Source: Octopus sinensis (Eukaryota). Taken from it: a DNA stretch of 64,000 nucleotides. The notes beneath the pieces are model-generated. The model saw only the letters and a list, made by a program, of their open reading frames with translations. It had not been told where the DNA came from and did not search any database. Both the position numbers and the translations under genes were made by a program. Positions 22,503 to 63,130 of this stretch are shown piece by piece; position 1 is the first letter of the stretch; each line of letters opens with the position of its first letter. Location: contig NC_043000.1 of NCBI RefSeq assembly GCF_006345805.1, forward strand, positions 100,254,001 to 100,318,000, read 5' to 3'.

Positions 22503-22675
22503 TATTTCTTTACTGCCCACAAGGGGCTAAACATAGAGGGGACAAACAAGGATAGACAAAGGGATTAAGTCGATTACATTGACCCCAGTTGGAAACTGGT
22601 ACTTTATTTATCGACCCCGAAAGGATGAAAGGCAAAGTCAACCTCGGCGGAATTTGAACTCAGAACGTAACGACA
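22503..22675 (-). mobile_element. 5'-truncated Meta-type SINE inserted into the tail of an RTE-tail element, with a 14-bp TSD
   Basis: atggacattaaatg at both 22489-22502 and 22676-22689; the insert is the reverse complement of part of 2955-3120. Confidence 0.85.
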
Positions 22676-28192: not shown

Positions 28193-29483
28193 CGAGGGGT
28201 GTTCAATAAGTAATGCCCCTGACCCACTTCCCATAGCAGTAGAGCAACGAAACTTGGCACAGTTATTAGTCTTTTTCTACCTAGGAACCACCCAGAGTTA
28301 CGCATTTCTCCCATCGTTTGATGCGGCTCTGGAGACCGTTTTTGTAGAAGAACCCAGCTTGGTCCTCCAACCTCAACGTGACTTCAGAAATCAAGGCTGC
28401 ATCATCTGGGAAACGCTTTCCTTTCAAAAACACTTCATGATTGGGATGAGGTGAAAATCAGAGGGTGCAAGGTCAGGAAAGTAGGGGGGATGGGGAGGAG
28501 TTCATAGCCATACGCCTGTGCTTCTGATCTGGCGACAAGCGAGTTGTGGACCAGAGCGTTGTCCTGCAGGAGGAGGATGCCTTTGCTGATCTTGCCCCGC
28601 CTCTTGATTTTGATAACTTCTCTTAATTTCCTCAAAAGTGAAGCATAATAAGCTCCTGCAATTGTGGTACCCTTTGCCAGGAAATCTGTCATCACTACTC
28701 CGTCCTGGTCCCAGAAGACTGTGAGCATGACCTTGCCAGCGGAGGGCTGCACCCTTGCCTTCTTTGGAGGGGGGTGAGTCACGGTGCTTCCACTGCATTG
28801 ACTGGGCTTTGGTCTCTGGATCATCGTGATGGACTCAGGTTTCATCCTGTGTAATCAGTCTTTTGAAAAATTTTGACTCATCTTCTTGGCACATCTCCAA
28901 ATTCACCCTCGAGCACTCGACGCGTTCTTGCTTCTGGAAAGGCGTGAGCAACCTGGGAATCCATCTGGCAGACACATTTTGCATATGCAAATGGTCATGA
29001 ATGATAGTTTCCACAGACCCGGTACTAATCTTGACCTCATGGGCTATTTGGCGAATAATTATGCGTCGATCTTCCAAAATGGCAACCTCAACTTGACGGA
29101 CAGATGCCTCATCAATGGCAGAAGGGGGCGACCAGATCTGGGAGCTGTTTCCACAGAATTCCGACCATGTTTGAATTCACGATGCCAGCGTTTTACAAGG
29201 TCATATGATGGGGCATCATCACCATAAGTTACTTTGATTTCATCAAAAGTCTCCCGTGGTGTGTGTCCTTTCAAATACAAAAACCGGATCACTGCTCGAC
29301 ACTCAACAGGCTCCATTTCACACTTGACTCGGTTCAAACACCTGTAAATCAGAAACCACAATTAATTCAGAGCTGTAATTTGCCACTTACTCTATAGAGA
29401 TATAAATGATTGCATATGCAAAATTTCAGCTAGATGAAACAACTGCAAGTGGGTCAGAGGCATTACTTATTGAACGTCCCTCG
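28193..29483 (-). mobile_element. Full-length mariner transposon (irritans/Himar-like), frameshifted transposase
   Basis: TIRs cgaggggtgttcaataagtaatgcccctgacccactt and its near-reverse complement, TA on both sides, 1291 bp; motifs ARWIPRLL, ITQDET, KVMLTVFWD, LLQDNA. Confidence 0.95.
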
Positions 29484-29585: not shown

Positions 29586-30846
29586 CAGGGGTTGGACAAA
29601 ATAATGGAAACAGCTTGCATCATACAATCATAATTTTGAAATAGCTATAAAACCATCAAAAGCTTGTTTATTTTTTCTTTTTGATCTATTTTTAGTGTTG
29701 CATATGTTTTCCTAAAATTGCTGCTTCTTTTCAGATATCATCAGAAAAAGGTAATTAAAATTCATTAAAACAATAGATTTATCGGACTTTCAAAGAGATC
29801 AAATTGTTGGTGCTTGTATGGCAGGCACTAGCGTAATGAAAACAGCCAAAATGTTTGGTGTATCAAGAAGTCCTGTCTCAAAAGTAATGACATCCTTTGA
29901 GAAAGAGGGAAAAACCTCCTTGTCGAAACAAAACTCCAGAAGAAAACTAAAACTTTCAGATAGGGACCATCGGACTCTTACGCAAATTGTTGGAAAGGAT
30001 CACAAAAGCACAGCTTCCAAAATTACTGCTGAGCTTAATGACCACCTCGAGAACCCAGTTCCCACAAAAACTGTTCACCAGGAGCTCCACAAAACCAGGT
30101 TTCACGGGGGAATTGCAATCAGAAAACCACTACTTTCAAAAACAAACGTTGTAAAGCATTTAGAGTGGAGTAAAAACTTACAGAATTGATCTTTAGAGCA
30201 GTGGAAGAATGTTAATTTTCTCAGACGAGTCATCCTTTACCTTATTTCTGACCACCAGCTGACTATATGTGTGGAGACAGCCAAAAGAAGCATTTGACCC
30301 AGACAGTCTTCTTCCAACTGTTAAACATGGAGGAGGATCTGTGAAGATCTGGGAGAGTGTGTGTGTGGGGGGGGGGCTATATCTTGGAAATCCGCTGGCC
30401 CAATGGTTTCCCTTCATGGCAGAATTAATAGTCAAGACTAAGCATTTTATCAGATCAAATTCCTCCTGTGGTTGCAAAACTGTTTCTGGAGGGAAATATA
30501 ATCTTTCAGGATGACAATGCACAAATTCACACTGATAAAATTGTTACTGAATGGTACGAGGAACATTCTGGCCACCACAGTCCCCAGACATCAATATTAT
30601 TGAACATTTATGGTGCATTTTACAAAAACAAATAAGGATCGACATCCTCCACCATCATCACTATAACAACTAGAGACTGTTTTAGCTGAAGGATGGACAA
30701 AAGTTCCTTTGGAAACAATTCAAACTTTGTACAATTCTATACCTCACAGAATTCAAGCAGTAATTACTGCCAATGGCAGTACTACTCATATTAGAATAGA
30801 TTTATTTGAAATTTTAAGATGTTTCCATTATCTTGCCCAACCCCTG
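29586..30846 (+). mobile_element. Full-length defective Tc1-like transposon
   Basis: TIRs caggggttggacaaaataatggaaac / gtttccattatcttgcccaacccctg with TA flanks; ORF fragments with HTH, PTVKHGGGSV, FQDDNA and a WPPQSPDINII-like region. Confidence 0.92.
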
Positions 30847-39359: not shown

Positions 39360-39426
39360 CAGTGGTTCCCAACCTGGGGTCTGAAAAGGTAGTACTGGGT
39401 GTCCATGGACTACATTCAAAATTTCA

Positions 39427-39458
<32 letters not shown>

Positions 39459-41488
39459 GCCCTCAGACCCCTTTTATTCACCACAGTCCTCCAGGTAATA
39501 ACAAAGGAATTCAAGACGGGTTGCCCCTGGGAGCTCCTCTATGCTGATGACCTGGCCCTCATAACAGAATCACTACCGGAACTAGAAAAGAAATTTCGGG
39601 TGTGGAAGCCAGGTTTAGAATCAAAAGGCCTTAGAGTCAAGACCAAAGTTATAGTAAGTAGGAAGGCAAACTCATCACACACCCCCTCAGGTAGGTGGCC
39701 CTGCTCGATCTGTAGAAAAGGTGTAGGTAGAAACTCCATAAGATGTACCCAATGTAAGCTATGAATGCATAAGAGGTGCAGCAACATCAAAGGAAAATTA
39801 ACTGAGAAGATAGCTTTCATGTGCGGCAGATGCACAGGGGATTTAGACACCACAGATACTCAGAAAACAGATTCCATCACACTCCAGAGTGAGAAACTAG
39901 AAGTAGTTGATAGTTTCCGCTACCTAGGTGACCAAGTTAGTGGGGGTGGTGGGTGCTCAGAGAGTGTCACCACTAGAATACGAATAGCCTGGGCAAAGTT
40001 TAAAAAGTTTCTACCCCTACTGGTGACAAAGGGTCGCTCACTCAGAGTGAAAGACTGTATGACACGTGTGCGAACTGCCATGCTTCACGGTAGTGAAACA
40101 TGGTCTGTGACTGCAGAGGACATGCGTGGGCTTGAAAGAAATGAAGGTAGCATGATCCGCTGGATGTTTAATGTCAGTGTGCACACACAACAGAGTGTAA
40201 GCGCCCTGAGAGAAATGCTGGACATAAGAAGCATCAGATGTGGTGTGCAAGAGAGATGTTTGCACTGGTATGGTCATGTACTACGGATAGATGAGGAGAG
40301 ATGTGTGAAGAAGTGCCACTCTCAAACAGTTGAAGGAATCTGGGGTAGAGGTAGATCCAGGAAGACATGGGATGAGGTGGTCAAGTATAACCTTTGAACG
40401 TTGGGCCTCACAGAGGCAATGACAAAAGACCAAAAATCTCTGGAGATATGCTGTATCTGCGAAGACCCAACAAATAACGTGAGTTCATGGCTGTTTCCTG
40501 CACTAGCTTCACATAACAGCCCCAGCCCATCCAAAGTACTTTGGATCGCAGAACAGCCTGCTGTGCTTACTTTGGATTGAAGGGTAACCTGCTGTGCTTG
40601 AGATCTATTGAGTCAAGTACATCAACATCAAATAAAAATCAAATGGAAATATGGCACGTTAAAAGCACCATCCAAACGTGGCCGATGCCAGCGCCGCCTT
40701 GACTGGCTTCCGTGCTGGTGGTACGTGAAATGTACCCACTACACTCACAGAGTGGTTGGCGTTAGGAAGGGCATCCAACTGTAGAAACACTGCTAGATCA
40801 GACTGGAGCCTGGTGCAGCCTCCTGGCTTCCCAGTCATGGTCGAACAGTCTAACCCATGCTAGCATGGAAAACAGATGTTAAAATACATAAGTATTAAAA
40901 TATTATTAATATACTAACTTTTTGTTTTTGTATATACCTGTTGTGTGCATTACACTTACTTCAAAGAAGTGGAAAAGCAAGAGAGAGGAAGAGAGTGAGT
41001 AAGAAAGGGAGAGTTAGAGAGAGAGAGAAAGAATGTGAAAGAGACAGTGAGTAGTGACAGAGTTTGTTGTGTTTTTAAAATGTTTCAGAAAGGACATAAG
41101 AGAGAAAGAGAGAGTGGAAGAGACTGAGTGGTGACGGCATTTATTTTGTGTTTTTAAATGTTTATCACATCACAAGAGAAGTAGATACATAGATACAAAT
41201 ACACATTGTTAAATCAAAAGCAAGAGAGAAGAAGGACACAAAGGAAGGGAAAGAGAGAAAGTGAGAGACAGTAGATACATAAATCCAAAGAAAAGTTCAT
41301 ACATAGATACATAGACAGTAAATACTGGTTGTCAATTTCACTTTGCATTACCACACAAGGATAAAATTAACTCACAAACGGCTGAATACTCCACAGAGAT
41401 GCATAATATTAATGTAGTTCTCAGGGAAATTCAGCCTCACAGAATATGACAAAGCAGGCTGCTTTGAATTACAGCAACAACTTGAGAC

Positions 41489-43539: not shown

Positions 43540-43728
43540 TAAACGTGATTTCCAATCCAGAAGTCGTGAGCTTCCGGAGATAGCCGAACTAGGTCGTGTA
43601 TCCACTTACGTTTACCAATGATGCAAAGTAGGCTAGTTTCGTATTAAATGACACTGCGAACATGATTCGTACTAATGAACAATTTTCCCTTATTTGAATC
43701 CTTTGATGTACAATTTGCAATAAACATG

Positions 43729-43764
<36 letters not shown>

Positions 43765-44430
43765 CACACACACACGGGTTCAGGGAATATAAAAGCATAA
43801 CAAACATGAACATGAAAAGAATGAAGAAAAAGAACGAGATAGAACGGTCACAATTGGTGAGAGAGAGAGTGAGAGATAGACGGCGCTGAATGTGTCACTT
43901 ACTTCCTGTTGGAACGGATTGCTAACGATAACGTTCTCCATGCAGATGATTAAACGGTCGACAGATAATTTGTTACTTTAACTTCATCGGTAAATATATT
44001 TGTTCAGTTTGATTTTACAATCTGTTTTCTTAAAAAATAAGTTATCGTATGCAAAACATAAATGCAAAAAATGTCCGACCGGAAGAAGATTTAAGGCGCA
44101 TGTGCGATATCAAAACGAGGTTATTTCCCGATTTCGTTGATAACACGATTATTATAATGAATAATTGCTATGTTTTCTGAGCGAGGCTCAACAGAGGAAA
44201 AGCGAATAGAAATGCTGACCTAATTTTCATTCAACCAACAGTTTATTGCCTGATCGACCAGTTTACATGTCATATTGCCTCGTTTCTAAATTGCGTTCGG
44301 TTGAAATCGCTACTTTCCGTAAGTTCAACCGTATGTTTACGCTCTTCGCTGTTTTATTCGTGAAGACCGCGCCACCACGGCTCTGAACGCTTAACCAAAC
44401 AGGCTACTGACGAATAAATCACCATGACGA
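43540..44430 (-). promoter_or_regulatory. Promoter/first-exon cassette 1 (proximal)
   Basis: ETS-like ACCGGAAG at 44078-44085, NRF1-like GCGCATGTGCG at 44096-44106, donor CAGGAA|GTAAGT at 43903/43902, CpG-retaining; homologous to cassettes 2 and 3. Confidence 0.7.
43903..43941 (-). CDS. Possible coding part of first exon, MENVIVSNPFQQE (phase 0)
   Basis: ATG at 43941-43939 in frame to the conserved donor; ATG absent from cassettes 2 and 3. Confidence 0.35.
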
Positions 44431-45419
44431 CCACAGCAAAGGGACATCACTCAAAATGTCCATGTATTTCTTGAAAACAAGATCAACAATAACGGAATAA
44501 TAGAAGTTCATGCTATATTATTCCGGCGATTCAATATAGACTAATCTTATACTTGGAAGAGCTCGCAATGGTCTAAATTTCTGACGTCATTGAATGCACC
44601 TTCCTTATGTTTGGCAAAATGTTTCCTGTGACAAAAGATTATGCTCCCTAAGTGAATAAGAAGTGTAATTATCAATCACTACATCATTATTTGGCATCTA
44701 AACTTTCGTACATAATCTTTTTCTCCCTGTTTGCAAAAACGTATATGCACACATTTGAATGTTCAGTTTTTGGCGGGTATTACACTTTAAGAGGTAACCT
44801 CCTTTAAGAGGCAAAAATCAAAATAAGCAAACCTAATCGTTTGACTTGCCAAATGCATCTACCAAATTTCTCTCAAATCACACAAAAACCACCCCCAAAA
44901 AAACAGACAACAAAAATAAACAATTGGGCATACTGGATGCAGTCACTGATACACTATACAATCATGAAGAATAATACAAAATGGTCCTGGCTGGGAAACC
45001 TCTGTTTATAGATCTGCTGATGAAGACATAAAACTCTGCTTGATGTGGGACAAGAACATTGGGGGTCACAAGGATTGGTTATATTGTAGTTTCTTAGAAC
45101 TATATGGTCTTAATATCTATATGGTTTATGATTCCCTGATGATAACTGCCATGACAAGACAACTGGAGGGGTGATTGTAAACCAAATAACAACACAGCTG
45201 GAACTTATTTTACAAATCTTACATAGAGGAATTAGTGCTAAATAAACGGAAAGACAATAGTTGGCTTTCAAACTTTTGCATTTAAATCAGTGGTAATCTA
45301 AATTAAAATTATGAAGTTTGTAATCTGTGATGGGAAGAGGAAATCAATGTTTCAAGATTGGGTCTTAATCAGAGAGAGAGAGAGAGAGAAACATTCTTGA
45401 AATAGCATTTATGTTATAC

Positions 45420-45655
45420 ATAAAAAGCACCAACCGATCGTGGCCGATGCCAGCCTGCTCTGGCCCCTGTGCCGGTGGCACGTAAAAAACACCCACTACA
45501 CTCACGGAGTGGTTGGCGTTAGGAAGGACATTCAGCTGTAGAAACATTGCCAAATCAGACTAGAGCCTGGTGCAGCCTCCATGGCTTCCAGACCCCGGTC
45601 AAACCGTCCAACCCATGCTAGCATGGAAAACGGACGTTAAATGATGATGAAGATG
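45420..45655 (+). mobile_element. RTE-tail SINE
   Basis: gcacgtaaaaaacacccactacactc...ggaaaacggacgttaaatgatgatg. Confidence 0.8.
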
Positions 45656-47659
45656 AGCATGTAGTATATTAATATCATCATTATCATTGTATTAATGTCT
45701 ATTTTTCCATGCATGCAAAAGTCAGATGAAACTATGCTGGGAGAGAGTTTTCTACAGCTGAATACACTTCCTGATGCTAACCATCACTAATTTCCAAGCA
45801 CATTGATAATCCCTCAGTTTGCTGAACATCAAACAGTCTAGACACGGTTATGCAGACAGAAGGAAACAAACAACACTACTTGAATGAGACTTTTGTTTAT
45901 AAATAGAGAATGCACAAGACCTGGGAAAATACAAACTCATCCCTACAAACACAGAGACACAAAAAAATAAACACACACAATATACTTGTTTTCATCTACC
46001 AGTTTCACTCACAAAGTACTGTTAAACTTGTGTCTATAGTACAGGATATCAGTAGACAGTGTCCATGCAGTGGGGCTGAACTCTTAACGTGGTTCTGAAG
46101 TGAACATCTTGACCACACAGCATATCTGTGCCTAAATGTAGTAAATCTCTGGTAAGGACAAGGGTATAGTTGTATTGGCATGTAACTATAGGTCAAAGAA
46201 TACAAGTGACAAAGTTCAAGAAGTTCACATTCTGTGCAGGAGAGAGTGATGACTTAAGCAAAAGAACATAATTGCATTAATATGTAGGTGAATGTCAATG
46301 AGCAGTATTAAAGTTCAGTTAAGATTGTGTGGGGGTCACTAGGAAGTCAAGTAAGGTGTTCATAGTGGCACAGAAGTAGGAATTAAATGGAGAAGTATTA
46401 TCTTCTGAAGTATTTGCATGACAGCCACACACTGTTTAATGAAAACATTTTAGCAATATCTAAGCTTGAAATCAATAGCTGTCCTTGTTTAGTTGAGATG
46501 ATATGATTGTAGATTTTTTCTGAGATGCAGGTCAGACTATAGATATTACTGAACATGTTTGTTAGGGTAAATGATTAGGATTTGGGATCAGAAATTATGT
46601 TGGAAAGGGATAACAATTTTTATTTGTCACACTCATCAGCAATATGTTGCAGATGTTTATCAGAATGCTGTTCAAGTGACAGTTCTTCAAATGCTTCAGC
46701 TGAGGCCCAGAGCATTTTCAGTTCAGTCATAATGAACATATGAATGTCAATGCCAGTAATCTGAAGTGGCATATCTGCATCCTCATCAACCACATCTAGA
46801 AGGTACCCCAGCATGTTCTTCAAATGCAAAATAACATCCATATCTTTTCTTCAGAAACTTTGCTGCTATTTGGCTCTTTAGAGAATAAAAGAAATAAAGA
46901 ATAACAGGCGACATGCTGTCATGAAGTTTACGAACTCTGAAGCAATTAAGATCTTGAAAACATATGGAATCCTGCCAAGCATTCTTTGAACCAGCGAGGC
47001 CATGAGCACCAACAGCTTAGCACAAGTGATCTCTGTGCACTATGAAATCATGGTGTTTGAGCTGTGACACATTGGTACTCATTGTTTTCATCACAGATCT
47101 GCAATGTACTCTCCTGCAACAGTTGGTGACTCTGAGGTGCCATATTATACAAATGGTATGGCATCATGTATAAATCTACTGCCATCACTAGGTACATAGC
47201 CAAAATAGTGCAGTGAATACAAGAGGGTAAATGATAAGCATACAAGTGAAAAAAATTAGAGTGTATCAAAAGAAGTGTACATCACACCAAAACATAAAAG
47301 ATATACAGTGGGCAAGAGAACCAAATATACCTATAGGTATATCCTATTGCCAACCTCCAGCATTACCACCATGTTAACAATAGTTTAACTATGCTTGCAC
47401 AAGTGAGTTGATCTTCAGCACTGCACTTCATGTTACGAATAATTGCAGTCCTATCTCATCTCTGAACCATGTGGGCCAAAATAACTGGTAGGTGGATGCA
47501 CTACCGCAACGCGAATGGCGACACCTGCCTCGTGACTCCCGCACCAACCTGTGCGACGGCGCACAGGCACGAAACCAGACAGGCAAAGACAGGGCAGCCA
47601 ATGATGCATGCAGAGCTTCGCGACCCGATTGCACATGCACCGGCAAATAGGGCTGAGAG

Positions 47660-48040
47660 TGCAAACAGCACTAGGCATGTCTTTTTGCAATCAACATCCT
47701 TCATATGTATGTACCAACAGGTATTCTCTCTTGCAAACTGTAAATGATTCCACTTGTAACTAGCTTTTCTCTCACCTTATTTGCATTGCAATTTTCTTGT
47801 ACACTAATATTACAAATGCAGCAGATCATGCTTGTTTCATTTCTGTTCATCTTGTTCCAAACCTCACAACAATGTAGCATCATACTATGTACACAAGCAG
47901 CATGCAATCTACTCTTTACTGAGAAACTTAATGTCACCGGAAGAGGCATGACTATGATTTTTTCCACACTTTCACTTGCTACAATGCTTTTGAAACACAC
48001 ACCTTCACTGCTAAATAGGTCACCTGGGAAACATGTCATC
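47660..48040 (-). mobile_element. Degenerate RTE ORF fragment
   Basis: SESV...LSFSVKSRLHAACVHSMMLHCCEVW...MICCICNISVQE parallels ORF 39765-40397. Confidence 0.75.
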
Positions 48041-48863
48041 ACTATTTGGGAGAATATATTTCAAAAGTAATGTTATTACCAAAAACTTTTATGCGACATA
48101 TGAAATCTATATTAGTTTGTCCATTGATCTCATTTAACACTGATAACACTGAAACACATAATTTCAATAATCATTTTCTACATGTTGAGCAAAATCTTTC
48201 TTTCTAACAAAAATTTCTGTCTCTCCTATGTTTAATTTAAGGTCCCTCAATGCTTGGCTATAGACCAATGTTGGATTTTTAAAAAGACCTATTACTGATT
48301 CAGCGTTAAGAACTAGGTTACCACCATACATTATGGCACATTTATCCACATAAATATAAATACTAACACAGAAGTGAACAAACTAAAGAAGTAAACACTA
48401 AATCTATTTGGCTGGAGTTACATATATTTAATAAGTTTGATGCAGCACATTACTTAAAGTTTCATGTATATAGGACATGCTCACCTCATCACAGAATGTT
48501 CACCTGGTGACAATGTTGACATGACCTAAGCCCACAAAACTTTAAAGAGGAGCTGAGTCAAGCTGTTATTATAAATACGTATAGGTGCATACATACATGT
48601 ATGAGTGTGTGTGTGTAAATTTATATTCATATATTTGTATCATACAATTTAAACCTCAAATTGCTTGACAATCAGTATTAAGAACTAACTCCATGCAAAT
48701 TTCTATTTATGTATGGTGGTTTGATCTCTTATTGTTGAGTCTAGATTTGAGTGTTTCACAGAATATATTTAGAAAAGAAAACATAACATGAGAGGTTGCA
48801 TAATTACACCATCTTAAGTATGCTTCCTTAGAATAAAGTGATTATTAGTTATTTTCCTATATA

Positions 48864-50122
48864 CAGGATGTTCAATTTAAAAGTTGACTAAATTGTATAT
48901 ACTAATAGTTATAAAGAATGTACAATATTATAGACAAACCTACATTTATCAAAATTCTCATTTAAAAGTTACGTCAAACTGGTTACAGAAGGTGTTGAGA
49001 TTGTTGGCTGCCATGTTGCAGATATATGTCATGACATTTGTTTTGGAACACATTAATCAAAACTTCACGTAGAATATTTTGGACAATATCAGTAATATCG
49101 GTACACAGTTCATCAAGTGTATGCAGATTCTTTGCAAATACAGTGTCCTTGATATAGCCAAATAAAAAGAAATTGAGAGGCGTTAAGTCTGGCAATCTGG
49201 GTGGCCAGAGGCCTTTCATGATCAACCTGTGTTCAAAAGTTTGTCAATAGTGAAACAAAGTGTGGTTGCTAATATGACATGTTGCTGAGCCCTGTTGAAG
49301 CCATGTGATACTTCTTTTATTCTCAGTTAGCTGCTCAACACACTGATCAATTATCTCACAATAACGTTCTGAATTCAAGGTCTTTTGGGGAAAACATTTA
49401 GTCCTACTATTCTTTGCCTGCTGGTAGCCATCCATACACCAATCTTCACTGCATGTAAGGGTGATTCAACAAACTCATGGGGATCGAGAGCAGTCCAGAT
49501 GCAAGTGTTTTGCAAATTTAGATATCCCAATAGGTGAAGCCAAGCCTCGTCACTGAAGGTCTTGTCAAGTTGGTTGTCATCCATGTTTTCTTGAGACCAT
49601 TTGTAGTAATCCTATCTTTTGGTAAAATCAGGAGGAATAAGTTCATGTAAAGAAGACATGCGGTATGGGTACAATTTCAGCGATTTGCGAAGAGCAGTAT
49701 GGCAGCTGCCAACAGATAATCCAGTTTTGTGAGACATCGCACAGATTTCCTGGGACTGCGAAGAATTCATTGATGGATATATCCCACAACATCATCAGAA
49801 AGGCAGATACGTTGGTGAACGTGTTTCTCATTTCCAACTGAGCCCGTCTTCTTAAACATTTTAATTGGAACATTAATTACCTGCTTAAAATCAGTAACGC
49901 AATTGTCAAAGGAGTAAATCTATCGCCTACTGATAAAAAGTCCTGATCTGAAATAAGATTCCATAATAAATTAACATTGCTGCACTGATAACACCATTAC
50001 GACTCCAGAAGAAATCTTGAATGAATGTGTTACACTTGTAAAAAGGCTAAAATCAATTTGGCATGGCAAGCCAATATTTTGACAGTTAATCAATCGAGTC
50101 AACTTTTTAACTGAACATCCTG
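48864..50122 (-). mobile_element. Full-length defective Tc1/mariner-superfamily element
   Basis: TIRs caggatgttcaatttaaaagttgact / agtcaactttttaactgaacatcctg with TA flanks; motifs FSDEAWLHL, KIGVW, WPPRLPDLTPLNFFLFGYIKD. Confidence 0.92.
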
Positions 50123-50804
50123 TAGTACTCAATACAAAATACAATTGAAGAGTTTCATATTTCATTTAAATGTTTGCACCACAATCAGTTTAATGTAATA
50201 CACATAGTGGCACTGGTATACTCACAGATATCCATCATCATCGTCAGAAGTCTGTTTTCCATGGGCTAGACAGTTTGACAAGAACTGCTAAATCAGAAGA
50301 CTACACCAAGTTCTGCTGTTTGCTTTGGCATAGTTTTTACAGCTGAATGCCTGTCCTAATTTCAGAGTATACTGGATGCTTTTTACATGGAACCAGCAGC
50401 AGTGAGGTCACTAAGAAACTTGCAAGACAAGAACCCCTCAACTGAGATAGCATTGAGGGACAGAAAAACAGTGTCTTGCAGCAGAAGAGAAACATGGCTA
50501 ACTCATGAGAGGAGAGAGAGAGAGAGAGAGAAGATAGTAAAAATGTGATGGGGAGAGTGGCACACCCAAGTTGCGGGTAATTGTACATAATGCAATGGAT
50601 CAGGAATCGGGGAAGAGTAAGTTCACAAGATTGTGAAAAGAGAGAGGGAATGTAGTGAGTAGCAGGTAAAGGGAGGGTGTGTGTTTATAATAATTATACA
50701 TAGATTATACATATGCATTTATGTACATATACAAGCACATAATCATGTAAACATAAATACATCATCTGCATCTCTGCCAAAATGTTAGCTTTAAGACAGT
50801 GAGA

Positions 50805-51275
50805 TCATCATTTAGTGTCCATTTTCCATGCCAGCATGGGTTAAGTGGCTTGACTGGAACTGGTAAGCCAGAGAGCTGTACCAGGTTCCAGTCTGATTTC
50901 GGCTTTGTTTCTATGCTGGATACCCTTCCTAATGCCAGCCAATCTAAGAATGTAGTGGGTCTCTTTTACAGGTCATCAACACTAGCTACAACTACGGTTT
51001 CACTTGGCTTGATGAGTCTTCTGAAGCTCAGCAAATTACCAAAGGTCTTGATCACTTGTCATTACCTCCATGAGACCTAACATTTGAAAATCACGCTTCA
51101 CCGCCTCATCCCATGTCTTCCTAGGTTCCCACCACTGTTAGAGATCAGCACTCCTTCACACAACTGTCCTTGTCCTTGTTCATACACATCACATGACTAT
51201 ACCAGCATGGTTATATCTTTTGCACAACAGATCTGATGCTTCTTATCCCCAAATTTTCTCTCAAGACGTTTACAT
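50805..51275 (-). mobile_element. RTE LINE 3' end (ORF end plus 3'UTR tail)
   Basis: Reverse strand reads ...PRKTWDEAVKRDF... continuing into the family tail and ending near catcatttag. Confidence 0.75.
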
Positions 51276-53664
51276 TCTGTCGTACATGCATGCTTCACTG
51301 CCATATAGCATGGCTGTTTGTACACAGGCATCATACACTCTGCCTACTACTTACACATCATATTATTCATATATTATATAAATACATACACATAAATATA
51401 AGAGGGAATTTTTTACCACTATGTGGAAACCCTAATGCTAGAAGATCCGCTATGGTCTTAACCACTAAGAGTTGTTCTCTAGAAAATTTAGCAAGCACCA
51501 GAAACGTAAGCGAGCAAGACAAATGAAAAGTAACAAAAATATAGATTAATCATAAACAATTGTTTCACTATCAACAAATTACATAATTTTACTTACACAA
51601 TTTATCTGTAGATCTTCAGAATGATCGTCTATACAAAATATAATTTGCAGAACTTCACGCCAGACATCAACACGAGGTCGAAAATGCATGCAGTTCTACC
51701 TATTACATTTGTGGTTACTTTCAAAAGTCTTCGTTTAGGCACACTATATATATATATTTCACAGTTTCATAATACAAAACCGCTGTAATCATAGGTCTTT
51801 GTTTCTATCATATAAAGATCCTTGAATTTTTATAGAATTTTCAGCAATTACAAAAAGAATATAATTCCTTCAGACTTTTATTTTTGACTCCCCATTACTG
51901 TGTATGTAACTAACTGTTTATAGATATATGAAAATACATAAACACACATGTATATCTATAAACTATAGCACACGTGTATATATGAACATACACAAACACG
52001 CTGAAACAAAAGTGTAAAAAGAAAGTACATAAATATATATCTACATATATATGTATACACAAACATAGACCTACATTTGTGATGCATATATATTCCTATA
52101 TGTAATTATGGTTGTATGATGTATACGCTGTAACTTTTAATGGCATATTTTCATAGAAAAAATTTTGGGATTTGCTTTGAACATAAAACCTAAATCTGAA
52201 AAAAAACTTTTTTTTTTTGAAAAATTCTTTGCTAAGATTTTTGTCAAAAGGTTACAAAAATATAATTTTACAATTATTGAATATATACAACTTCAGTTAT
52301 TTATATATATTGAACATATACAACTTCAGTTATTTAGTACAGGTATTTTGCTCTTAAATTAAAAAAAAAGATCTTTTATAAAGAGAAATAAAAAACACAG
52401 ACTTCTTTTCTAAAAAAATGTATAATAAACAGATACAGAGATGGAGTGAGCCTGATCTTCTACAGTTGATTGTACACTCCAAAACAGATGAGAAGAAATT
52501 GAAAAACATTTTTGTCAGCTTCATAAAATCCTATGTTTAAAATACATAATTTAGGAGAGAGAAAAAAAAAACTGGTATTTGAACTTTAGAATAAAAAGGT
52601 GGTGTGAGATAGGATATTAAAATTCAAAAAGAAAATATTTTCAAAATGTTTTCTTTTCCCTCCGAAACGAAAAAAAAAAATTATAATGGGAGTTGCTTAG
52701 GAAACTGATTTTATATACCCCAACTAAATTCATATTCAAGATGTGTAATTTGTTTAATACCATGAATTGTTCATCACTGTTGGCTTAATCCAAATTGCTT
52801 GAATATATAATAATAGTTTTGCTACAGCCACTGATTTCTAAAATCATGAAGTCAGATATTTTTTTCAGTGTCTAGAAATTTTATCTGTGTCATGAAATTT
52901 TTCACGTAGATATATCTTCTCTGAATATGCAATGATTTTATTAAGTTCTATGGAGAGAAATATGCTGGAAAAATCATGAGATGTTTTATACTCCACTTGG
53001 ATGTTTTTAGATACATAGGTACGCACATACGTACATACATGGGCAACATATACAATTGACAGAGTACAATACTAGAAACATTGGAATAGACACAAAACTA
53101 AAGAGTTAACCATTGTAAGTGTCTACAGGTCATCATCATCATTTTACATCCACTTTCTACATTAGCATGGATTGAACAGTTTGACAGGATCCAACAGGTC
53201 AGAGGACCAGATAAGTTTTGGCATGGTTATTATGGCTGGATGCCTTTGCTAATAATGCTAACCACTTTACATACCACTGGATGCAATCTTTCATAGCACC
53301 AGCACAATACAAGTTGCCTTACCATCAGTTAGACTACAGTACTCTCTTAAGCTTTGTACTGTCACTGCTTCATTTACTAACTACTCACAGATAATATGGC
53401 ACTTGCACTGGTACTTTCAAGGCAAAAAGAGAGCCTCATGATGGATGGCATAAATTTATTGCTTTTTAGAGGATTGTCTTTAATCCTGTTTCATCATTAG
53501 GCTGCAGTCATGCTGGGGCACTGCTTTGAAGGGTTTAGCCACATAAATTGACGCTAGTACTAATTTAGGTCAGGTACTTATTTTCTGCTGTTAGTTTATG
53601 TCTGTTTTACTTTGCTGAACTGCAAAGAAAAGGGACAGTTGCTAAGCAATGGAGATGGTTGGGA

Positions 53665-53925
53665 CAAACACATTCTTTTACTTTATTCTTTTACACATTT
53701 CAGTCATTTGACTGCGGCCATGCTGAAACATCATCTTAAAGGGTTTTAGTTGAAGAAATCGACTCCAGGACATATTCTTTGTAAGCCTAGTACTTATTTT
53801 ATCAGCCTCTTTTGCCGAACTACTAAGTTATGAGGGATATAAAAACACCACTAGCCTAAGATGCTATGCAGTGGGACTGAACCTCGAACCTTGTGGTTAG
53901 GAAACAAACTTCTTACCACACATAG
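53665..53925. mobile_element. SINE fragment (cagtcatttgactgcggccatgctg family)
   Basis: Similar pieces at about 53480-53620 and 54735-55050. Confidence 0.6.
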
Positions 53926-55419
53926 GCTTCTACACAATTTTGTCTGCCACAGTCACTCACAAGTCACTGGTCAGCCCAGGGCTCTTGTTGCAAACATTTG
54001 CCAAAAATGTTTGTGCAGTGAGAATGCACATAGATGCAAAGTGTGTGTGGTTTGACAGCACAACCATGCCTACAACTATGGTAGTAAAAAGAAAAACAGA
54101 AGGAATACTGATAGGAGTAATGAAGGAAAGAAAGCAGAGGAAGAATAAAAATTTTTAAAAAACTCTTTTTAAAAGAAATTCTTTTCCAATTTATTTTGCT
54201 GAATTACAAGATAAATATACAGGAAAAACTAAAACCCATAAATAGAGAAAAATAATGCTCAGTAAAAATGCTAACAATGAATGGACAGATATTCAACATA
54301 AGCACACCAATTATCCAGCTGTAATTTTTTTTACATTTTTCTCAACAATTTCTTTGGTTTACTAAGTTTTCAACATGAAAGACTACGATTCTGAAAAAAA
54401 AATATTTTTCTGTAATTTGAGTTTTTGTAATTTTTGCTCCCCACTTAATTTTTGAATCTTTTCTTTGAATTTTCTTTTTCTATTTCCAATACGAAAAAAA
54501 AACCAAAAACAAAGATCACCATAATTCTGCAATAAGACGGGTTTTCTACCCTCAAAAATTCAGAGACAAAGTGCAAATGACAGAGCTAAATACACACTCC
54601 CAAGTTGGGCAAAGGTTTCTCACAGTAAAAACAGCTTTGGTGTTTGTCTTTCATGACAACACTGAGAAAAGAGGATTCTTTCAGTAAGTACCAAATTGAA
54701 CTTCTGAGACATTGGAAGCCACTATCATTTATCTTTTACCGGTTTCAGTCATTGGACTGTGGCCAAGTCGGAGCACTGTTTAGTCAAACAAATCAACACT
54801 AATTCATATTTATTTTTTAAGCATAGTACTTATTCTATTTGGTCTCTTTCACTGGACCAATAACTGATGAGGATGTAAACAAACTAAAACTAGTTGTCAA
54901 GTGGTAGCGAGGTGCACGAGCATATCTATGGCAGGCTTCTACACAGTTTTCATTTACTAAATCACATTGGTCAGCCCAAGGATATAGTTGAAGATACTTG
55001 CCCATGGTGATGTGAAGTGGGACTAAACCAGAAGTAAGGTTGCAAAGTGAGCTTCGTTTTGGGTGTAGATCAAAAGATGGATTAAATACGTGACTCAAGC
55101 AGTAAGATGAGATGATCCATGTAAAAGTGATGTATAGAGTCATATAGCATGTCCAGCAAAAAATGTGACAAAATGTCTAATTTTTTTTTTTTTGCAAATA
55201 TTATTTGGTTCTGGTTGCACACAAACATGGAAAAGAAAAAAGAAAACCACAAAGTTTTAAAATGAGGAACGGCAAAAAAATTTTTAATCGAATTTTAAAA
55301 AATTCCTAGGATTGTAATTCATGTTGAAAACACAGTTTAAAAAAAAAAGATTGATAAAACAATTACAGCGGGTTAAATGGTGTACTGAATCCGAAACTAT
55401 GCCGCTGAATATTATTACA

Positions 55420-56300
55420 TATAGATTCAGATCCAGAAGTCGACAACTACCGGAAACAGCCGAACAATGTCAACGTTCACATACGAAGCAAAGCGGGAAG
55501 ATTTCATATGAAATAGCACTCCAAACACCATAAGTAATAATTTTTAACGTTGGAAGGCTTTTACAACTTTATGGAGAAGGGAGAAAGTACATGACTGGCT
55601 TTCTATTTTAGTGACCCCGTTTTGCAATGGTACAAAACAAAAACAAACGTACGGTCGGAGGTTATAAACAAGCGCAGCATAATGAAGATGTAGAGTAAAA
55701 AAGCCCAAGAAAAAGTTTAAAAAAAACATCCGATAAACAGACAAAGAGCGACAGTGGAGTTAATTGGTGGAGAGAGAGAGAGAGAGCATTAAATATGTTA
55801 CTTACTTCCTGTTGGAACGAATTGTTCACAAGTCGCCAATGACAATGTTATTGGCGCAGACAATGAAGCAGACGACAGATAGTATTTTCATACTTTTAAC
55901 TTCATCGCTAAATGTTTACAAAAATTGTTTTCCTTAAAGATAAATTAACGTCTGCGAGTCACGGTAAGGTAAAATGTCTGACCGGAAGAAGAATTATTGC
56001 GCATGTGCGAAATCAAAACGAGGTTGCAACTCGATTTCTTTGACATACGGGAGAAATATTGTAATAATGATTGTTTATATATTTTCTAAGAAGCAATAAG
56101 ATATAAACTAATGACTAAAATCACAGATAAACTACCGGAAGTATTTATTCAAAAGGAAAATAAGGCTCAATGGAGAAAAGCAATCCTCTAGAGAAAGTGA
56201 GAGTATATACATCGACCTATTTTTCTTAACCAACAACAGCCTCTGCCTCAGAAGTCGTTAGTTTCCCTGCCTTCAACTGTATTTCTACGCTGTAACCTAC
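55420..56300 (-). promoter_or_regulatory. Promoter/first-exon cassette 2
   Basis: ACCGGAAG at 55981-55988, GCGCATGTGCG at 55999-56009, donor at 55806/55805; donor-to-ETS spacing 175 bp, identical to cassette 1. Confidence 0.7.
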
Positions 56301-57499
56301 CCTTTCCCCAAGACTGACATTCAGGACTCTTAGCTAGATACGACACCCACAACCAATATATATATTTTTGAAAGGAACATCAAAAACGAAATGACTGAGC
56401 ATCACATGATTTCAGCGTTTTTATTTAGTATATTTGTAAGAAATTGAATACGAATTAATTTCATAATTTATATCTCATTGCAGAATGTCTCCATCTAAAT
56501 TTAATTGGATTTTTATTGGAAACTCATCTCATGTTTCAAAGAGCTTTTGAGTAATACAAAAACCCACTAGGGAGCATGGCAAACCTCAAGCATGAACCAA
56601 GAAGGAACTTCTACATAGTCTTTTGACCTTTCAAATACAGGAACCAAATCCCTCTCAAATCACACCCTAGCATTTGAAAAGGAAAAAAATGCATATAAGA
56701 AAAATGTACAACGGAAATGGAAAGGTTATGACTGAAATGTCTTATCATGGCTCTGCTGGATCACCATCTTCAGAATAAACAGTAAAAACCAAGAGCTAGA
56801 CTTAACAACAAAACATTCATGACCATTACTACCAAACATGGTACAACTTACCAAAACGAGAGGTTATGAAAGCATCAAAGAAATGCAAATATTCAGACAT
56901 TTATTGATGTTCAGTATTTTTACGCAATGACAGCGTTTATTTACTTAATCTTGCTAACATCAAGTAACATGAAATAAGAAATTGAAAATACAAACAAGTT
57001 TAGTCATCTGAATTAGAAGCTAAACTCCAATTTTGGGGTATAAATATAAGAATAGAATTCCTAAAAGATTATAGATTGATCTTTACACTAACTTAAATGT
57101 TGGTCATACGAAACCTTGCAAATCATAAGAAAATAAAGTGCTGCCTGCTACTATTACTTTCATTTAAATGTACTGTGATCAATGAATGACTTTGAGGGAC
57201 ATCTGAAGAAACTATAAGTATAAAGCAATAGAAAGCTTCTCAATATAAAATTGGTATTGGAGACAAGATTATAGCTGCATGATTTCAAGCTCAATCTCAC
57301 TGCACAGCATCTTGGGCAAATGCCAGCTTTAGACTGGTCAATGCTTTATAAGAGGAATTCAGAAGATGAAAACAGTAGAGAAGTCTGTCATATATACATG
57401 TATACTAGGTATTTGTGGACATAACTTTTAGATAACAATGTTATGTGACATAAGCAGAAACTTTAACTTTCTTATTTCTCTTTCAGACACACCAACAGC

Positions 57500-58250
57500 A
57501 AGACCATAACACATTCCAGTCTGAAACAGGAAATGAAAAGGCATGTTGTGCTTGTAATTCTTGCTGCTAACCACAGTGCCTGGAGGTCATAAGCTTCTGG
57601 AAAAAGTTGGATGTATCATCTGTGGCCAAGACGAAAATGCATATTCTGCAACAGGACATCATCAGGATGGTCAAGTTCAAACAGCAGATCTTTGAGATCA
57701 TCAACAGCAAGCCAAATTTAGTGAAGACCACAGTCAAGGATCTCACTATCAGTTTGGTGCACAAAGGTATCAGGCATAAGTCCAGTATAATGAGGAAGGC
57801 CAGGTCATGTCTAGTAAGACCAGATAACAATGTGATCCAGTGAAACTGCTCATGAACAAGCTTAAACACTTCAAGAATCCCATTATGCTATGGTTCTTTA
57901 TTGATGAAAAGGATTTTGATGAGGACCACAAGGTGAACAAGAATGACAACTAAAAGAATAGGTCTAGAAATGGTTCCATGTTTCCCAGCAAAACTCTTGT
58001 TTCCTCTCACATGATCTTTGCAACCCTGGATTGGCTGGCCAAGAATTTTCATGATCATGTGATTCTAATTATGTACTAAATTAGTTCTCCTGATCTGAAC
58101 CCTCAAGGTTACTACATCTGGGGGATTGCTAGCCAGGAGGCCAAATGGCTTTACACCACTTATGGAGTAGTCATGTCATTTATGTCCTGTATAAACAGAA
58201 TACCAAGCAGTGCTTTGACAGGCAAAGACATGGAGATAGTGAGATGGTGA
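57500..58250 (+). mobile_element. Degenerate maT/Tc1-like transposase relic
   Basis: DEKDFDEDHKVNKND and SSPDLNPQGYYIWG motifs. Confidence 0.7.
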
Positions 58251-58299
58251 AACTATTTGGCTTGAAGTGAGTTATATGTTTGTCACTCAAGCATTCCAA

Positions 58300-59000
58300 G
58301 AAAATATCGTAACCTATGTATCATGAACTGCTACAAGAGTAAAGCATTAGAAAGAAGAAACCATGGAAAAGCTATAAAATTAGTGGAAGTGCTCCTGATT
58401 AAAAAGAAAATTAGCCTAGATAAGATGCAGTTTGGTTTTGTTACAAGACAAGATACCAATGCCTCTGTACTCTGGTGGTCATTAAAAGAAACTTGTGATA
58501 GCTAAATGGTTTGTGAAGGCCATGTAAAGCATGCAGAGTGATGCTGTTAGGAAAGTGTCAATTAATTAAATATTAGGTTAACAGATTGGTGTCCATCAGA
58601 ACTCAATTATCAACTCTCTTTTGAGTTGATGAATGGTTTCCTGTGGGAATTCTAGTGTGCTGATGTTTTAGCTCTTATAAGATGATGATGGTGAGAAAAA
58701 AATTCTACGTCTGAAAGCAAAATCTAGAATTCAGAGGCTTTAAAGTGAATTTAGCAAAAACAACATTTCTAGTAAACATAAAAGACAGAACTCTATTGTT
58801 TTGGGAAAGTGGCCAAGCATACTATTTAGAGGAATAGAAATAAATTCTTTAGGATGTATCAAATGTCAACTATGGACACACAAAAGAGCCACAGGCAAGC
58901 TAACAGGAGAATTAAACCTTGTATGAGGCATTTAAATAGGAACAGTTATCAGTTAAAGTACATGTGAAACAGATTATCCATTCAAATGTTTAGAAATCTG
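58300..59000 (+). mobile_element. Highly degenerate RTE RT fragment
   Basis: LDKMQFGFV, ggtttcctgtgggaattctagtgtgctgatg (GCPWELLYADD-like). Confidence 0.55.
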
Positions 59001-61014
59001 TCCAAAGACAATAGAGAATGAATGATAGCTATTGATAGAAATTATGTCAAGAGAGTGTGATTGATGTTAATAAGTGACCAAACGACGAGAAGCAGTTAGT
59101 AGTATAGAAGTGGTAAAGTTAGCTGCTTAGAAAGAGCATGAGTAATTGATGGCAAAGATGGTGATAGAGAGTGCTGGATGTCAATAATAGAATTACCTGG
59201 AGGAGAGGAAGTGACCACAAGCAGCATGATGGTAAAAGGAGACGTGTATGAGAGACCAATTGATCTGGTGCAAATCTACACAAGCAAAAGTGAATGCATG
59301 TTTTTTGCAATTTGCATGTTGAATTCAAAGAGTAGCATACTTGTATAAAATTATGCTTGAAATTGCAAAAAAACCTTTTATGGAGACTTTTCTTATGTTG
59401 CAGCAACCCTACAGGGAGGATTGTCTGAATTCTAAACAATGTCATAAGTAGTACCAGTGGGTTTCAAATCAAGAACATCCATTAGAAATGGTCAGAAATC
59501 TGGATGATATTTCTTCCAAAACAAAATATGATGATCACATTACCAAAGAGCAAGCAAATCTGTGAAAATCGTTTCCTGACAACCCATTAAATTTCCCAAG
59601 TAACAATGCAAATGTAATCATTTGAATCATAAATTTAAAAGAAAAATTGAAAATACAGCATGTTGCAATGGAATTTGAGCCACATCTGCTGACAGAAAAA
59701 CAACAAAAAAATAGAAGAATGGGGATACAATCAGGAGCATTTTAATTAATTAAATGCTGATGCAAACTATCTGAAAAATGTTTTTAACAGGTGAAAAAAT
59801 GTAAATGCACAGCTACAATGTTGAAACAAATATTGTCATAGTGGTATGGACCATTATGTCCATGACCAAAACAAAGAACATCAATGGTTATATTTTCCTG
59901 GACTACATGGTTGGCTGACTATGAGTGATCAACACATGACTTTCTTAGAACCCCAAAATTTAAGATTTGATAGTCTTTTTTCTAGTGGAAGGGAGTTGTT
60001 CCTTGTGTGTTTGTTCCATATGGTCAGATAATCAATAATTCCAATGGTCTGAGGCAATAGGCAAACAGAGTGCTCAACCACCAAACAACTGCTCAAGCAT
60101 CACTACCTATCAGAGAATTTTTGGTAAAGCTCATGATTACTCTTCAGATAAGTCCCTTTTCCCAGTTTTATTTCCAAAGTTGAAGTCCATCCTAAAAGGT
60201 AGCAATTCTTCTTTTGTCACTTGTTGGGTCTAGAATGAAAAGCAGAGCCCATGACTTTTGAGGTTCCCCGAGACTTTGTGAAATTCATATCCTTAATGTT
60301 CAGGTTAAACTGTTGCAGGACAACACCTGCGGAAAAAGCACGAGCATGTAGAAGATTCTAGAAGGCTTATGTTCTGAGGTTGAAGGATTGGGATCAGAGA
60401 TTAATGTGAGAAAAAGGGTGGTTAGATGTACAAAGGGTACCAAGAGCTGGGGAGACAAGTGGGACAGTGGTACCTGAGTAGCAGAGGTAAGAGGCTGGCC
60501 AGAGCTGAAGAACAGAGACCATTATAGTTGTGATAGGTTAGAGAAGAAACAACATGCCTGTGGGCCAAACGCTGGAGTGTATCTATTTGCAAAGGAATGT
60601 CAATCAGCAGTGAGGCTCTTCTACAGGTATGATCCAGGATGCCAGTGTTTGTAGCAGCACCATACCAATTTTGGGAGCAGTATTCTGTTGTGGGAATTAC
60701 TTAAGCCTTGCAGAGTATCATATGTTGTTGGGGGCTAAAGAGAAGGGCAAGTTCTTGGGATGCTGTCCTAACTATGCTATGGATATGCTTTTTGCCAGGA
60801 ATGATCTTCAGATATAGTGAGGCCTAACACTTGGGGAGATTGAGAAGGCTCAAGTTGAGTGCCACTCATAATTTAGAGAGATGGGGATGTAAACAAACCA
60901 AAATCAGCTGTCAAGCAATAGTGAATAGGGCAACCACAAACACATATATACACATATTCACACAAGTATGCGTGTTAGGTTAAAAACTTCATCTCCAAAT
61001 ATATACTCTTAGCA

Positions 61015-61520
61015 TTATCATCATCATTTAACGTCTCTTTACCATGTTGGCATGGGTTGGACAGTTTGACAGGAGCTGGCCAGCCAGGTAGCTGTCCAAG
61101 CTCCAATTGTCTATGTTGGCAGCGTTTCTACAGCTGGATGCCTTTCCTAATGCCAACCATTTTACAGAGTGTGCTGGGTGCTTTTTACATGGCACCAGCA
61201 CCTGTGAAGGACAAACCTGTATGGATGACAGTGATGTTACTTAGCTTGACGCGTCTTCTCAAGAACAGCAAATCACCACAACTTCCAGTATCCTTGTCAT
61301 TTCCTCACTAAGGCCCAGCATCTGAAGACCCTTTCTCACCATTTCGTCCCACATCTTCCTGGGTCTATCCCTTCCACAGGTTCCCTTCACAAGTAGAGAT
61401 CAGCACTTCATTAAGCAGCTGTCCTCATCCATATGCATCACATGAACAAATCAGTGCCGTCTTCTCTCTTGCACACATCTGATGCTTCTTGTAACCAGTT
61501 TTCCTCAATCTTTTTCGTTT
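61015..61520 (-). mobile_element. RTE LINE 3' end with tail
   Basis: Same organisation as 50805-51275. Confidence 0.8.
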
Positions 61521-61659
61521 GTACACACATTCACGTAAGCGTGTGTCTAAAGTATTTCACGGAAAGGATGGACAAGATGTTACGAGGATGAAACGTACGT
61601 AAAAATCAACGCGCGGGGTGAGAAAAGATTGAAATTTTGAAATTGAAGACATTAAAAAA

Positions 61660-62390
61660 AAATTATTTTACGATTTGTCAAGAAAAAAAATCAATGTCGA
61701 TAAAATAATTTGGCGAACCTTCGGTATATGTACCGGATATATTTCAAAAAAGTGTTTTTCTTTTATATATGGGGCGGGTTATGGTTAGGGGTGGGAGAAA
61801 AGGGTTTCTGTTATCTTCAGAAATGTAAACAAAGTCACGTGTGTACATATACTGAAGCATCGCCAATAATTTTAAAAATTGGAATTCGGTAATTCGCTAA
61901 GCTAAATATATCCACATACTTATTTTCAGTTACTGCAAAATAAGATCTAGAAGTCGACGGCTTCCGGAGATACCCAAACAAAGTCATTTAAGTTTACGAT
62001 GAGCAAAGTGGAAGAGTTTCGTAGGAAATTACACAACATCGACGATATTAGGTTCATTAGCCAATAAAAAAAAAACTTCCATCTCTATTTTGGAGAAAAT
62101 TTTTTTAAATTCTTTTACGATTTATTAAATAAGGAAAAAAAATCAATGTAGATAAAATAATTTTTTTAAATTGGAATTCAGTAATTCGCAATGGTAAATA
62201 TATCCGAATATTGTCTAACTTTCAGTTACTGCAAAATAAGATCCAGAAGTCGACGACTTCCGGAGATACCCGAACAGGTCACATGAGTTTACGATGAGCA
62301 AAGTGGAAGGGTTTCGTAGGAAATGACACATCGACGATATTAGTTCATTAGCCAATAAAAAATTTCCATCTTTTATTTAGACACAAAAGA
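61660..62390. repeat. Tandem duplication of the intronic element of cassette 3
   Basis: ttggaattc..ttcagttactgcaaaataagatc.agaagtcgacg.cttccggagatacc...gttcattagccaataaaaa occurs at about 61880-62070 and again at about 62170-62365. Confidence 0.9.
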
Positions 62391-63130
62391 TTGCTCACTT
62401 GTTTGGAACTTCGGTGATCAATTTATGTAAGGTTGCTTGTTTTGTTTCAATAAAATTTTAAAAAAATACACATATAGGTCAAAGGTGTAAGAAAAAAACA
62501 ATCATTATAAACGCGAAGAAAATGTTATAAAAATAATCTGACAGAGATACGAAGAGACAGATTTGAGCCAATTAGTAAATTCGAGAGAGTGGAGAAACGA
62601 AACATTACTTACTTCCTGTTGCCAATGGCTTGTTTATAAGATGACGTCGAGAACGTTGTTGATGCAGACGATCGAACAGACGGCATATAATGTTTTCTTA
62701 CTTTGACTCCATCACCGAATATATATATATATTTATATATATATGTTTAATTTGTTTATCTTAGAAGTAAGTTACCGTACATATGTGTCAGGCGAGAAAA
62801 TGTCTGACCGGAAGAGGAATTAAAGCGCATGTGTAAAATGAAAACGAGGCTGGTCATTGATTCGTTGAGTGACAAGGAAAATATTATAATGAGTAATTGT
62901 ATATTTCCTGTGAAGAAATGACAGCAAACGTGTAGAAAACGGTATTTATTTTAAACGACCAATAGAAAAAATACTTCTTAGAAAAAAGCTTAAGCCGACC
63001 TATCTTTCTCTCTGTCAACAATGTTTATCCGATCGATCGGATTACATGTCATATCGCCACCAAAAGAAGGTCAACTTGAAAATAGCCACATTGCATATGA
63101 CACCAACGAATAAATCACAACAACGAGTGC
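62220..63130 (-). promoter_or_regulatory. Promoter/first-exon cassette 3 (distal)
   Basis: ACCGGAAG at 62807-62814, GCGCATGTGT at 62825-62834, donor at 62613/62612; shared ttacatgtcata and acgaataaatcac blocks upstream. Confidence 0.68.

Follow-up and report, generated by a model that had tools for sequence, protein, structure and literature searches.

Can a promoter and its first exon be multiplied next to a gene that itself stays single? This question is raised by 64,000 nucleotides (nt) of the Octopus sinensis genome (RefSeq assembly GCF_006345805.1, contig NC_043000.1, positions 100,254,001 to 100,318,000 of the forward strand; hereafter 'the window', to whose first letter all positions refer), in which an earlier note had pointed out three homologous modules in the same orientation at about 43.9, 55.8 and 62.6 kb. 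We call these cassettes A, B and C, and a fourth copy found beyond the window cassette D. The explanation we favour, and hold to be reasonably probable, is an array of at least four old paralogous units, each consisting of a promoter and a first exon and each spliced to one giant exon on the minus strand. That the units join this shared gene is borne out by annotation for C, appears plausible from the sequence for A and B and is doubtful for D. The analysis covered the window plus 50 kb below and 100 kb above it (214 kb), as well as the whole 2.72-Gb assembly.

The three modules of the window stand out by motif counts and alignments alike. Exactly three copies of the donor-containing word CTTACTTCCTGTT are present in the window (at 43898, 55801 and 62608; expected 0.13), a number that none of 100 shuffles reaches; the 18-mer AAAATGTCYGACCGGAAG is likewise present three times and no more (at 44068, 55971 and 62797; expected 0.01). 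GCGCATGTG and AAAACGAGG come next in each of the aligned cassettes, and directly inside every putative intron there is a (GA)n tract, which on the sense strand is rich in CT. Within the first conserved part, block 1, a TATA-less promoter-like stretch reads NRF1-like GCGCATGTG, 9 bp, ETS-like CCGGAAG, where ETS and NRF1 denote matches to a motif pattern only. It leads into a putative short 5′ exon of ~175–195 nt that ends at a perfect GTAAGT donor. The duplicated unit measures ~0.9 kb, core identities between pairs of cassettes amount to 62–70%, and all four copies share the minus-strand orientation.

Block 1 of cassette A spans 43903–44125 (−), with an exon of at most ~175 nt that ends at 43903 in the donor GGAA|GTAAGT; the ETS-like ACCGGAAG is found at 44078–44085 (+) and the NRF1-like GCGCATGTG at 44096–44104, followed by AAAACGAGG. 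In cassette B (block 1 at 55806–56028, −), the exon ends at 55806 with the same donor GGAA|GTAAGT, and ACCGGAAG and GCGCATGTG occupy 55981–55988 and 55999–56007, respectively. The corresponding positions in cassette C (62613–62845, −) are 62613 for the exon end, 62807–62814 for ACCGGAAG and 62825–62833 for GCGCATGTG. The distance from ACCGGAAG to the exon end is thus 175 nt in A, 175 nt in B and 194 nt in C, exactly the donor-to-ETS spacing that the earlier note had given, and the motifs, invariant donor and (GA)n tract it had listed are present in all three copies.

Is this simply a member of a dispersed repeat or transposable element (TE) family, of which three copies happen to lie here? The region is indeed full of interspersed repeats, and many genomic copies would have told against an array. 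Yet whole-genome BLAST with cassettes A, B and C as three queries returned matches only at A–D, the extra matches of cassette C all falling on its (TA)n tract. Likewise, a pattern with 20 specified bases over the motif pair matches the genome exactly four times, at A–D (reversed control: 0), and its two one-mismatch matches, both on contig C30, have no further similarity to the cassette. At the sensitivity of BLAST and of the pattern search, the cassettes are a locus-specific family of four, and the chance that they belong to a repeat family is negligible. The fourth member, D, was recovered by a profile search 17 kb past the window end, with its exon end at window-equivalent 81062 (L006:~7026–7401).

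What was multiplied is the promoter and 5′ exon unit, not the gene. In a self-comparison of 121 kb, many short interspersed repeats are seen (a ~180-bp family, reverse transcriptase (RT) fragments and, further upstream, a 183-bp satellite), and homology between cassettes is confined to the units. Within the intervals of 11.9 kb and 6.8 kb, we see interspersed repeats and TE relics only; nothing there resembles the giant exon, in line with the absence of gene bodies proposed before. The region's long open reading frames (ORFs) consist of mariner/Tc1 and RT relics and of one 704-amino acid (aa) ORF between C and D that is similar to a long interspersed nuclear element (LINE). A tblastn search of the 214 kb with the giant-exon translation (2089 aa) found the exon itself and no paralogue. 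A tandem duplication of the whole gene whose bodies later decayed is ruled out by this lack of any paralogous coding remnant in the 214 kb. An Rfam scan of 43–64 kb gave only sub-threshold matches to microRNA models resembling simple repeats.

Downstream of the array lies the gene itself. Its giant constant exon (8112–14334, −; 6.2 kb) carries the whole remaining coding sequence, with the stop codon at 8112–8114, and lies within an open frame of 2089 codons at 8112–14381 (−). The acceptor reads ...ttttcag|G at 14335|14334, precisely where the earlier note had placed it, and an internal ATG in good context follows at 14324–14322. The frame is 99% identical to O. sinensis XP_036358159 ('mucin-5AC isoform X3'), whose 90% cluster comprises isoforms X1–X6, one 2070-aa product and two Octopus vulgaris fragments. 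NCBI names this serine/threonine/proline-rich orphan protein of 2070–2098 aa 'mucin-3A/5AC-like'; the mucin label reflects nothing but that composition, and the protein start has no sequence resembling a signal peptide. The giant-exon protein contains no Pfam domain, and neither a word-indexed search nor an exhaustive phmmer search with its last 450 residues against 1.84 billion representatives found a homologue beyond the O. sinensis/O. vulgaris cluster. A transcript-fragment search with the first 190 giant-exon residues returned no match. The coding bias of the giant exon accounts for the strong GC skew at 10–14 kb. Short tandem peptide repeats also occur in the protein (VSSLADIKP five times, NLIRPAQEV four times), and the NCBI isoforms vary additionally by internal in-frame deletions, for example of 14 residues near position 1150.

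The evidence that a cassette joins this gene comes from the protein N-termini. Isoforms X1, X2, X3 and X6 start with MPSVRSSASTTFSTSSYKQAIGNRK and continue with KLEMKAKN... from the giant exon. Their residues 1–23 (MPSV...AIGN) map to 62618–62686 (−), that is, within cassette C, where the ATG at 62686–62684 opens a frame of 24 codons plus 2 nt. The AGG codon (R24) and the two following A residues run to 62613, the end of the cassette C exon at the predicted donor GGAA|GTAAGT, and AA together with G14334 forms K25, placing the exon in frame with the giant exon. The NCBI models thus connect the two across a 48-kb intron that holds cassettes A and B, and for cassette C bear out the proposal that the first exons join the giant exon at 14334. 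This connection was most likely built from transcript alignments, since protein homology could not have guided such a model.

Not all products of the gene begin at C. The 2070-aa NCBI product starts at the internal MKAKN; it requires a 5′ end that does not code, as A, B or D would provide. Two further 5′ exons are not paralogous to the cassettes: one at 27455–27590 (−), which supplies the X4 N-terminus MAFLMIW (ATG 27474, donor TG|GTATGA) and is preceded by an acceptor-like ...ttcag, and another that ends at 20173, where its last stretch at 20173–20186 (−), ATGAATATAAATAG|GTAAAT, matches the N-terminus MNINR of the O. vulgaris model. The cassettes are therefore not the only 5′ ends of this gene. 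For the X5 N-terminus, MRR, no exon with a GT donor site was found in the 150 kb searched, and the sole candidate, ATGAGAAG|GCAAGA at 20432–20425 (−), requires a GC donor. This candidate sits within an ORF-like stretch rich in glutamate, arginine and lysine that is possibly a TE relic.

If A, B and D serve as first exons, they would be non-coding ones. In the frame that joins the giant exon, all three have stops and no downstream ATG, which rules out a coding reading of these exons; C alone contains an ATG from which the frame stays open as far as the main ORF. At the site of the C start codon, the sequence is ATATG in C, ATCTG in A and B and GTTTA in D. All four copies do share a conserved upstream open reading frame (uORF) of 4–5 codons, reading MKLK* in A and MKLKV*, MESK* and MKFN* in the others, and cassette A has an additional 15-codon uORF that ends directly before the main ATG. 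The ATG of C stands in weak context (T at −3), which makes leaky scanning past it to the main ATG plausible.

Have the copies been maintained? In a four-way alignment of block 1, 134 of 307 ungapped columns are invariant, and these are clustered, with runs of 13 (ACAGGAAGTAAGT) and 9 (CACATGCGC); the observed clustering is reached in 2 of 20,000 column shuffles, though such tests disregard the alignment's own clustering of matches. A, B and C also share a second conserved stretch, block 2, which measures ~110 bp, contains an inverted ETS-like pair and is situated ~250–290 bp into the intron. Alignability differs sharply along the unit: z scores are 20–26 for block 1, 8–14 for block 2 and 1–5 for the ~180 bp between them, and sequence past block 2 cannot be aligned (z about 0). 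Parts that were copied together have therefore decayed unevenly, which points to selection on blocks 1 and 2. In addition, the observed-to-expected CpG ratio (CpG o/e) of exon plus promoter is 1.80 in A, 1.61 in B and 1.53 in C; the region has a median of 0.68 and reaches 1.33 at its 95th percentile. Uneven decay and high CpG o/e in A–C together argue for constraint.

Block 2 is found at 43555–43680 (−) in cassette A, as an intronic element with the inverted ETS-like pair CCGGAAG...CGACTTCTGG, and at 55445–55570 (−) in cassette B. It is tandemly doubled at C, with a proximal copy at 62250–62375 (−) and a distal one at 61954–62096 (−), and absent at D. The distal copy stems from a younger local tandem duplication (61865–62071 versus 62156–62362, 86% identity, 291-bp offset), so small-scale duplication has recurred in the region.

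Alongside the caveat on the shuffle tests, several points weigh against an array of working first exons. Each transcription start site (TSS) in the cassettes, like the use of A, B and D, is putative, and the NCBI gene models are predictions. At the donor, CAGGAAGT is itself an ETS-type word, and donor invariance hence need not come from splicing alone. Cassette D may be decaying: it has lost CpGs (CpG o/e 1.04), is devoid of block 2 and shows an altered ETS flank, with CCGA replacing the CCGG of the ETS-like word. Finally, ~90–125 nt before the donor, at a distance that varies between copies, stands a conserved pyrimidine-rich tract ending in AAG; if it served as a weak acceptor, the cassette exons would be internal ones.

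The state of D invites a reading in which C alone works and A, B and D are dead or dying relics of first exons, comparable to the relic variable exons of UGT1/PCDH clusters and kept by chance or by residual enhancer activity. It would account for the low CpG o/e, the missing block 2 and the changed ETS flank of D, for the protein models, which show C only, and for the lack of an in-frame ATG in A, B and D. It sits less well with the observation that all four copies keep the GTAAGT donor, the NRF1-like word, the ETS core and the mini-uORF, when the sequence between the blocks has decayed. Moreover, the CpG o/e of A and B exceeds that of C, and NCBI models the 2070-aa product with a non-coding 5′ end. 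We judge this reading somewhat unlikely.

The pyrimidine-rich tract, in turn, bears on whether the units are tandemly duplicated internal exons of the 5′ untranslated region (5′ UTR), used serially or in a mutually exclusive manner, with the promoter upstream of D. The tract is T-rich and ends in AAG in four of four copies, and a TAAC-like branch word is present in three of the four. But AAG is the weakest type of acceptor, and the units contain no strong one. Conservation is highest in the CpG-containing motif pair, which precedes both the exon and the AAG, and ETS/NRF1-like words combined with a CpG o/e of 1.5–1.8 are what one expects of a promoter rather than an intron. The same layout of motifs, exon and donor also recurs at an unrelated locus: the two pattern matches on contig C30 (L024 and L025; G000:C30:8962267-8962291 and 9299824-9299848), which are ~97% identical, inverted and 337 kb apart, carry CGCATGCGC-N10-CTTCCG at the spacing of the cassettes and a CCG|GTAAGT donor ~125 nt further on. 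Because this locus shares the pair, its spacing and the downstream donor, motif pair plus donor may well be a general promoter and first-exon layout of the octopus. Internal exons are accordingly unlikely, and we would give them little weight.

Another way to explain conserved ETS-like words would be that the cassettes, with the exception of C, act as enhancers that resemble promoters, or else drive short non-coding transcripts of their own, and are not joined to the gene. ETS-pair elements in two blocks per cassette would suit this, as would the fact that splicing of A, B and D is putative. It leaves unexplained why every copy has a strong invariant donor in the gene's sense direction, with a fixed spacing to the motifs, and C, whose layout is no different, does connect to the gene; we consider this explanation quite unlikely. 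Our own inference is that the cassette motifs are a promoter and the exon of C probably a first exon, not an internal one; A, B and D may be used as first exons too.

If the array of paralogous promoters and first exons is taken as the best explanation, the following scheme emerges. Each cassette would start transcription on the minus strand, and its donor would be spliced across 30–67 kb to the single acceptor at 14335|14334. A, B and D, if used, would provide non-coding first exons, translation then starting at the ATG of 14324 to yield the 2070-aa protein; C would add a 25-residue N-terminal extension from its weak-context ATG. Such an array would diversify or reinforce the use of promoters and 5′ UTRs and hardly change the protein. 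A more far-reaching version, in which all four cassettes are live promoters chosen differentially, be it by tissue or stochastically in each cell, and spliced to one acceptor, is in our view unlikely. Were it true, the locus would be an invertebrate cluster of variable promoters and a constant protein, in which the duplication of a housekeeping-type promoter and 5′ UTR unit, conserved uORF included, adjusts how a disordered protein restricted to this lineage is expressed and translated, and cassette C would have been caught gaining a coding N-terminal extension.

How does this compare with known systems? Tandem variable first exons with their own promoters that are spliced to constant exons are known from PCDH, UGT1 and GCNT2 (PMC1885805). 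The octopus locus resembles PCDH alpha/gamma, UGT1A and GCNT2 in its tandem, same-orientation paralogous first exons from local duplication, of which there are four here (A–D), and in the combination of a promoter-like element and donor per exon, a shared downstream acceptor and long-range splicing, the last two as proposed here. Signs of birth and death are likewise seen, namely diverged copies, a possibly decaying D and the young sub-duplication at C.

The variable exons of PCDH and UGT1 encode large variable protein domains. Nothing of this kind is encoded by the octopus cassettes, A, B and D being closed in the joining frame. Of the likeness to protocadherin or UGT1 loci drawn in the earlier note, the architecture of a tandem paralogous array therefore stands, whereas diversification of the protein does not: the first exons are ~175–195 nt long and mostly non-coding, and protein comes from C only, with 25 residues. 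Other differences from PCDH, UGT1A and GCNT2 lie in the constant part, a single 6.2-kb exon with essentially the whole protein, in the small number of copies (four only) and in the motifs, which are housekeeping-like (ETS/NRF1-like) rather than a cluster-specific conserved sequence element with CTCF-type choice. The host, moreover, is an orphan gene of an invertebrate.

In terms of output, the locus resembles genes with many alternative first exons, such as PLEC, NOS1 and GR (PMC1885805; NR3C1/GR, NOS1 and PLEC: PMC1885805, PMC8373072). As in NR3C1/GR, NOS1 and PLEC, several alternative 5′ exons lead to one common coding exon and the choice mainly concerns regulation and the 5′ UTR; the non-paralogous 5′ exons at 27.4 and 20.2 kb add to this likeness. 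To our knowledge, the first exons of NR3C1/GR, NOS1 and PLEC are generally not recognisable as paralogues of one another, in contrast to the four octopus first exons, which together with their promoters are clearly paralogous.

Tandemly duplicated 5′ exons that are used via alternative promoters form a recognised class in human genes (PMC8373072). The octopus units share with these N-terminal substitutions by tandem exon duplication that a 5′ exon and its promoter were duplicated and that the copies are alternatives, as proposed here. Yet this class is defined by homologous coding N-termini (PMC8373072), whereas the octopus exons are non-coding except for C, where an ATG arose. No octopus first-exon array turned up in literature searches; on this weak negative evidence, the locus would be the first cephalopod example found.

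Overall, local duplication seems to have produced an ordinary alternative-first-exon gene here; no new mechanism is revealed, and the protein is hardly diversified. The value of the locus lies elsewhere. If several cassettes are active, it would offer a compact and datable case of alternative promoters arising by local duplication of a promoter and first exon, in a cephalopod setting where 5′-end architecture is poorly characterised. Cassette C illustrates how a non-coding first exon can gain a start codon, and the alignment of the copies amounts to a small natural mutagenesis series of a TATA-less octopus promoter, from which one can read the words that have survived a long divergence.

A few observations on the surrounding sequence remain to be recorded. 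The 704-aa open frame upstream of C occupies window-equivalent 75956–78067 (−; L006) and is LINE/RT-like judging by the start of its sequence. The ~183-bp unit, satellite-like or similar to a short interspersed nuclear element, has a solo copy at 22503–22675 in the window and forms short tandem arrays upstream (window-equivalent 90.2–90.8, 106.1–106.8 and 112.2–112.6 kb; L007–L010), with 84–94% identity. The available O. vulgaris locus (L026) reaches window-equivalent 31.5 kb only and includes no cassettes, and its identity of 98.6% is too close for footprinting. A segment of ~1.3 kb at 28193–29482 has no counterpart in this otherwise 98.6% identical locus and may be a species-specific insertion or deletion; it contains a mariner transposase relic (Pfam Transposase_1 at 28435–28851). 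Further relics in the window are a Tc1-type helix-turn-helix sequence at 29755–30186 and RT remnants at 39393–40397.

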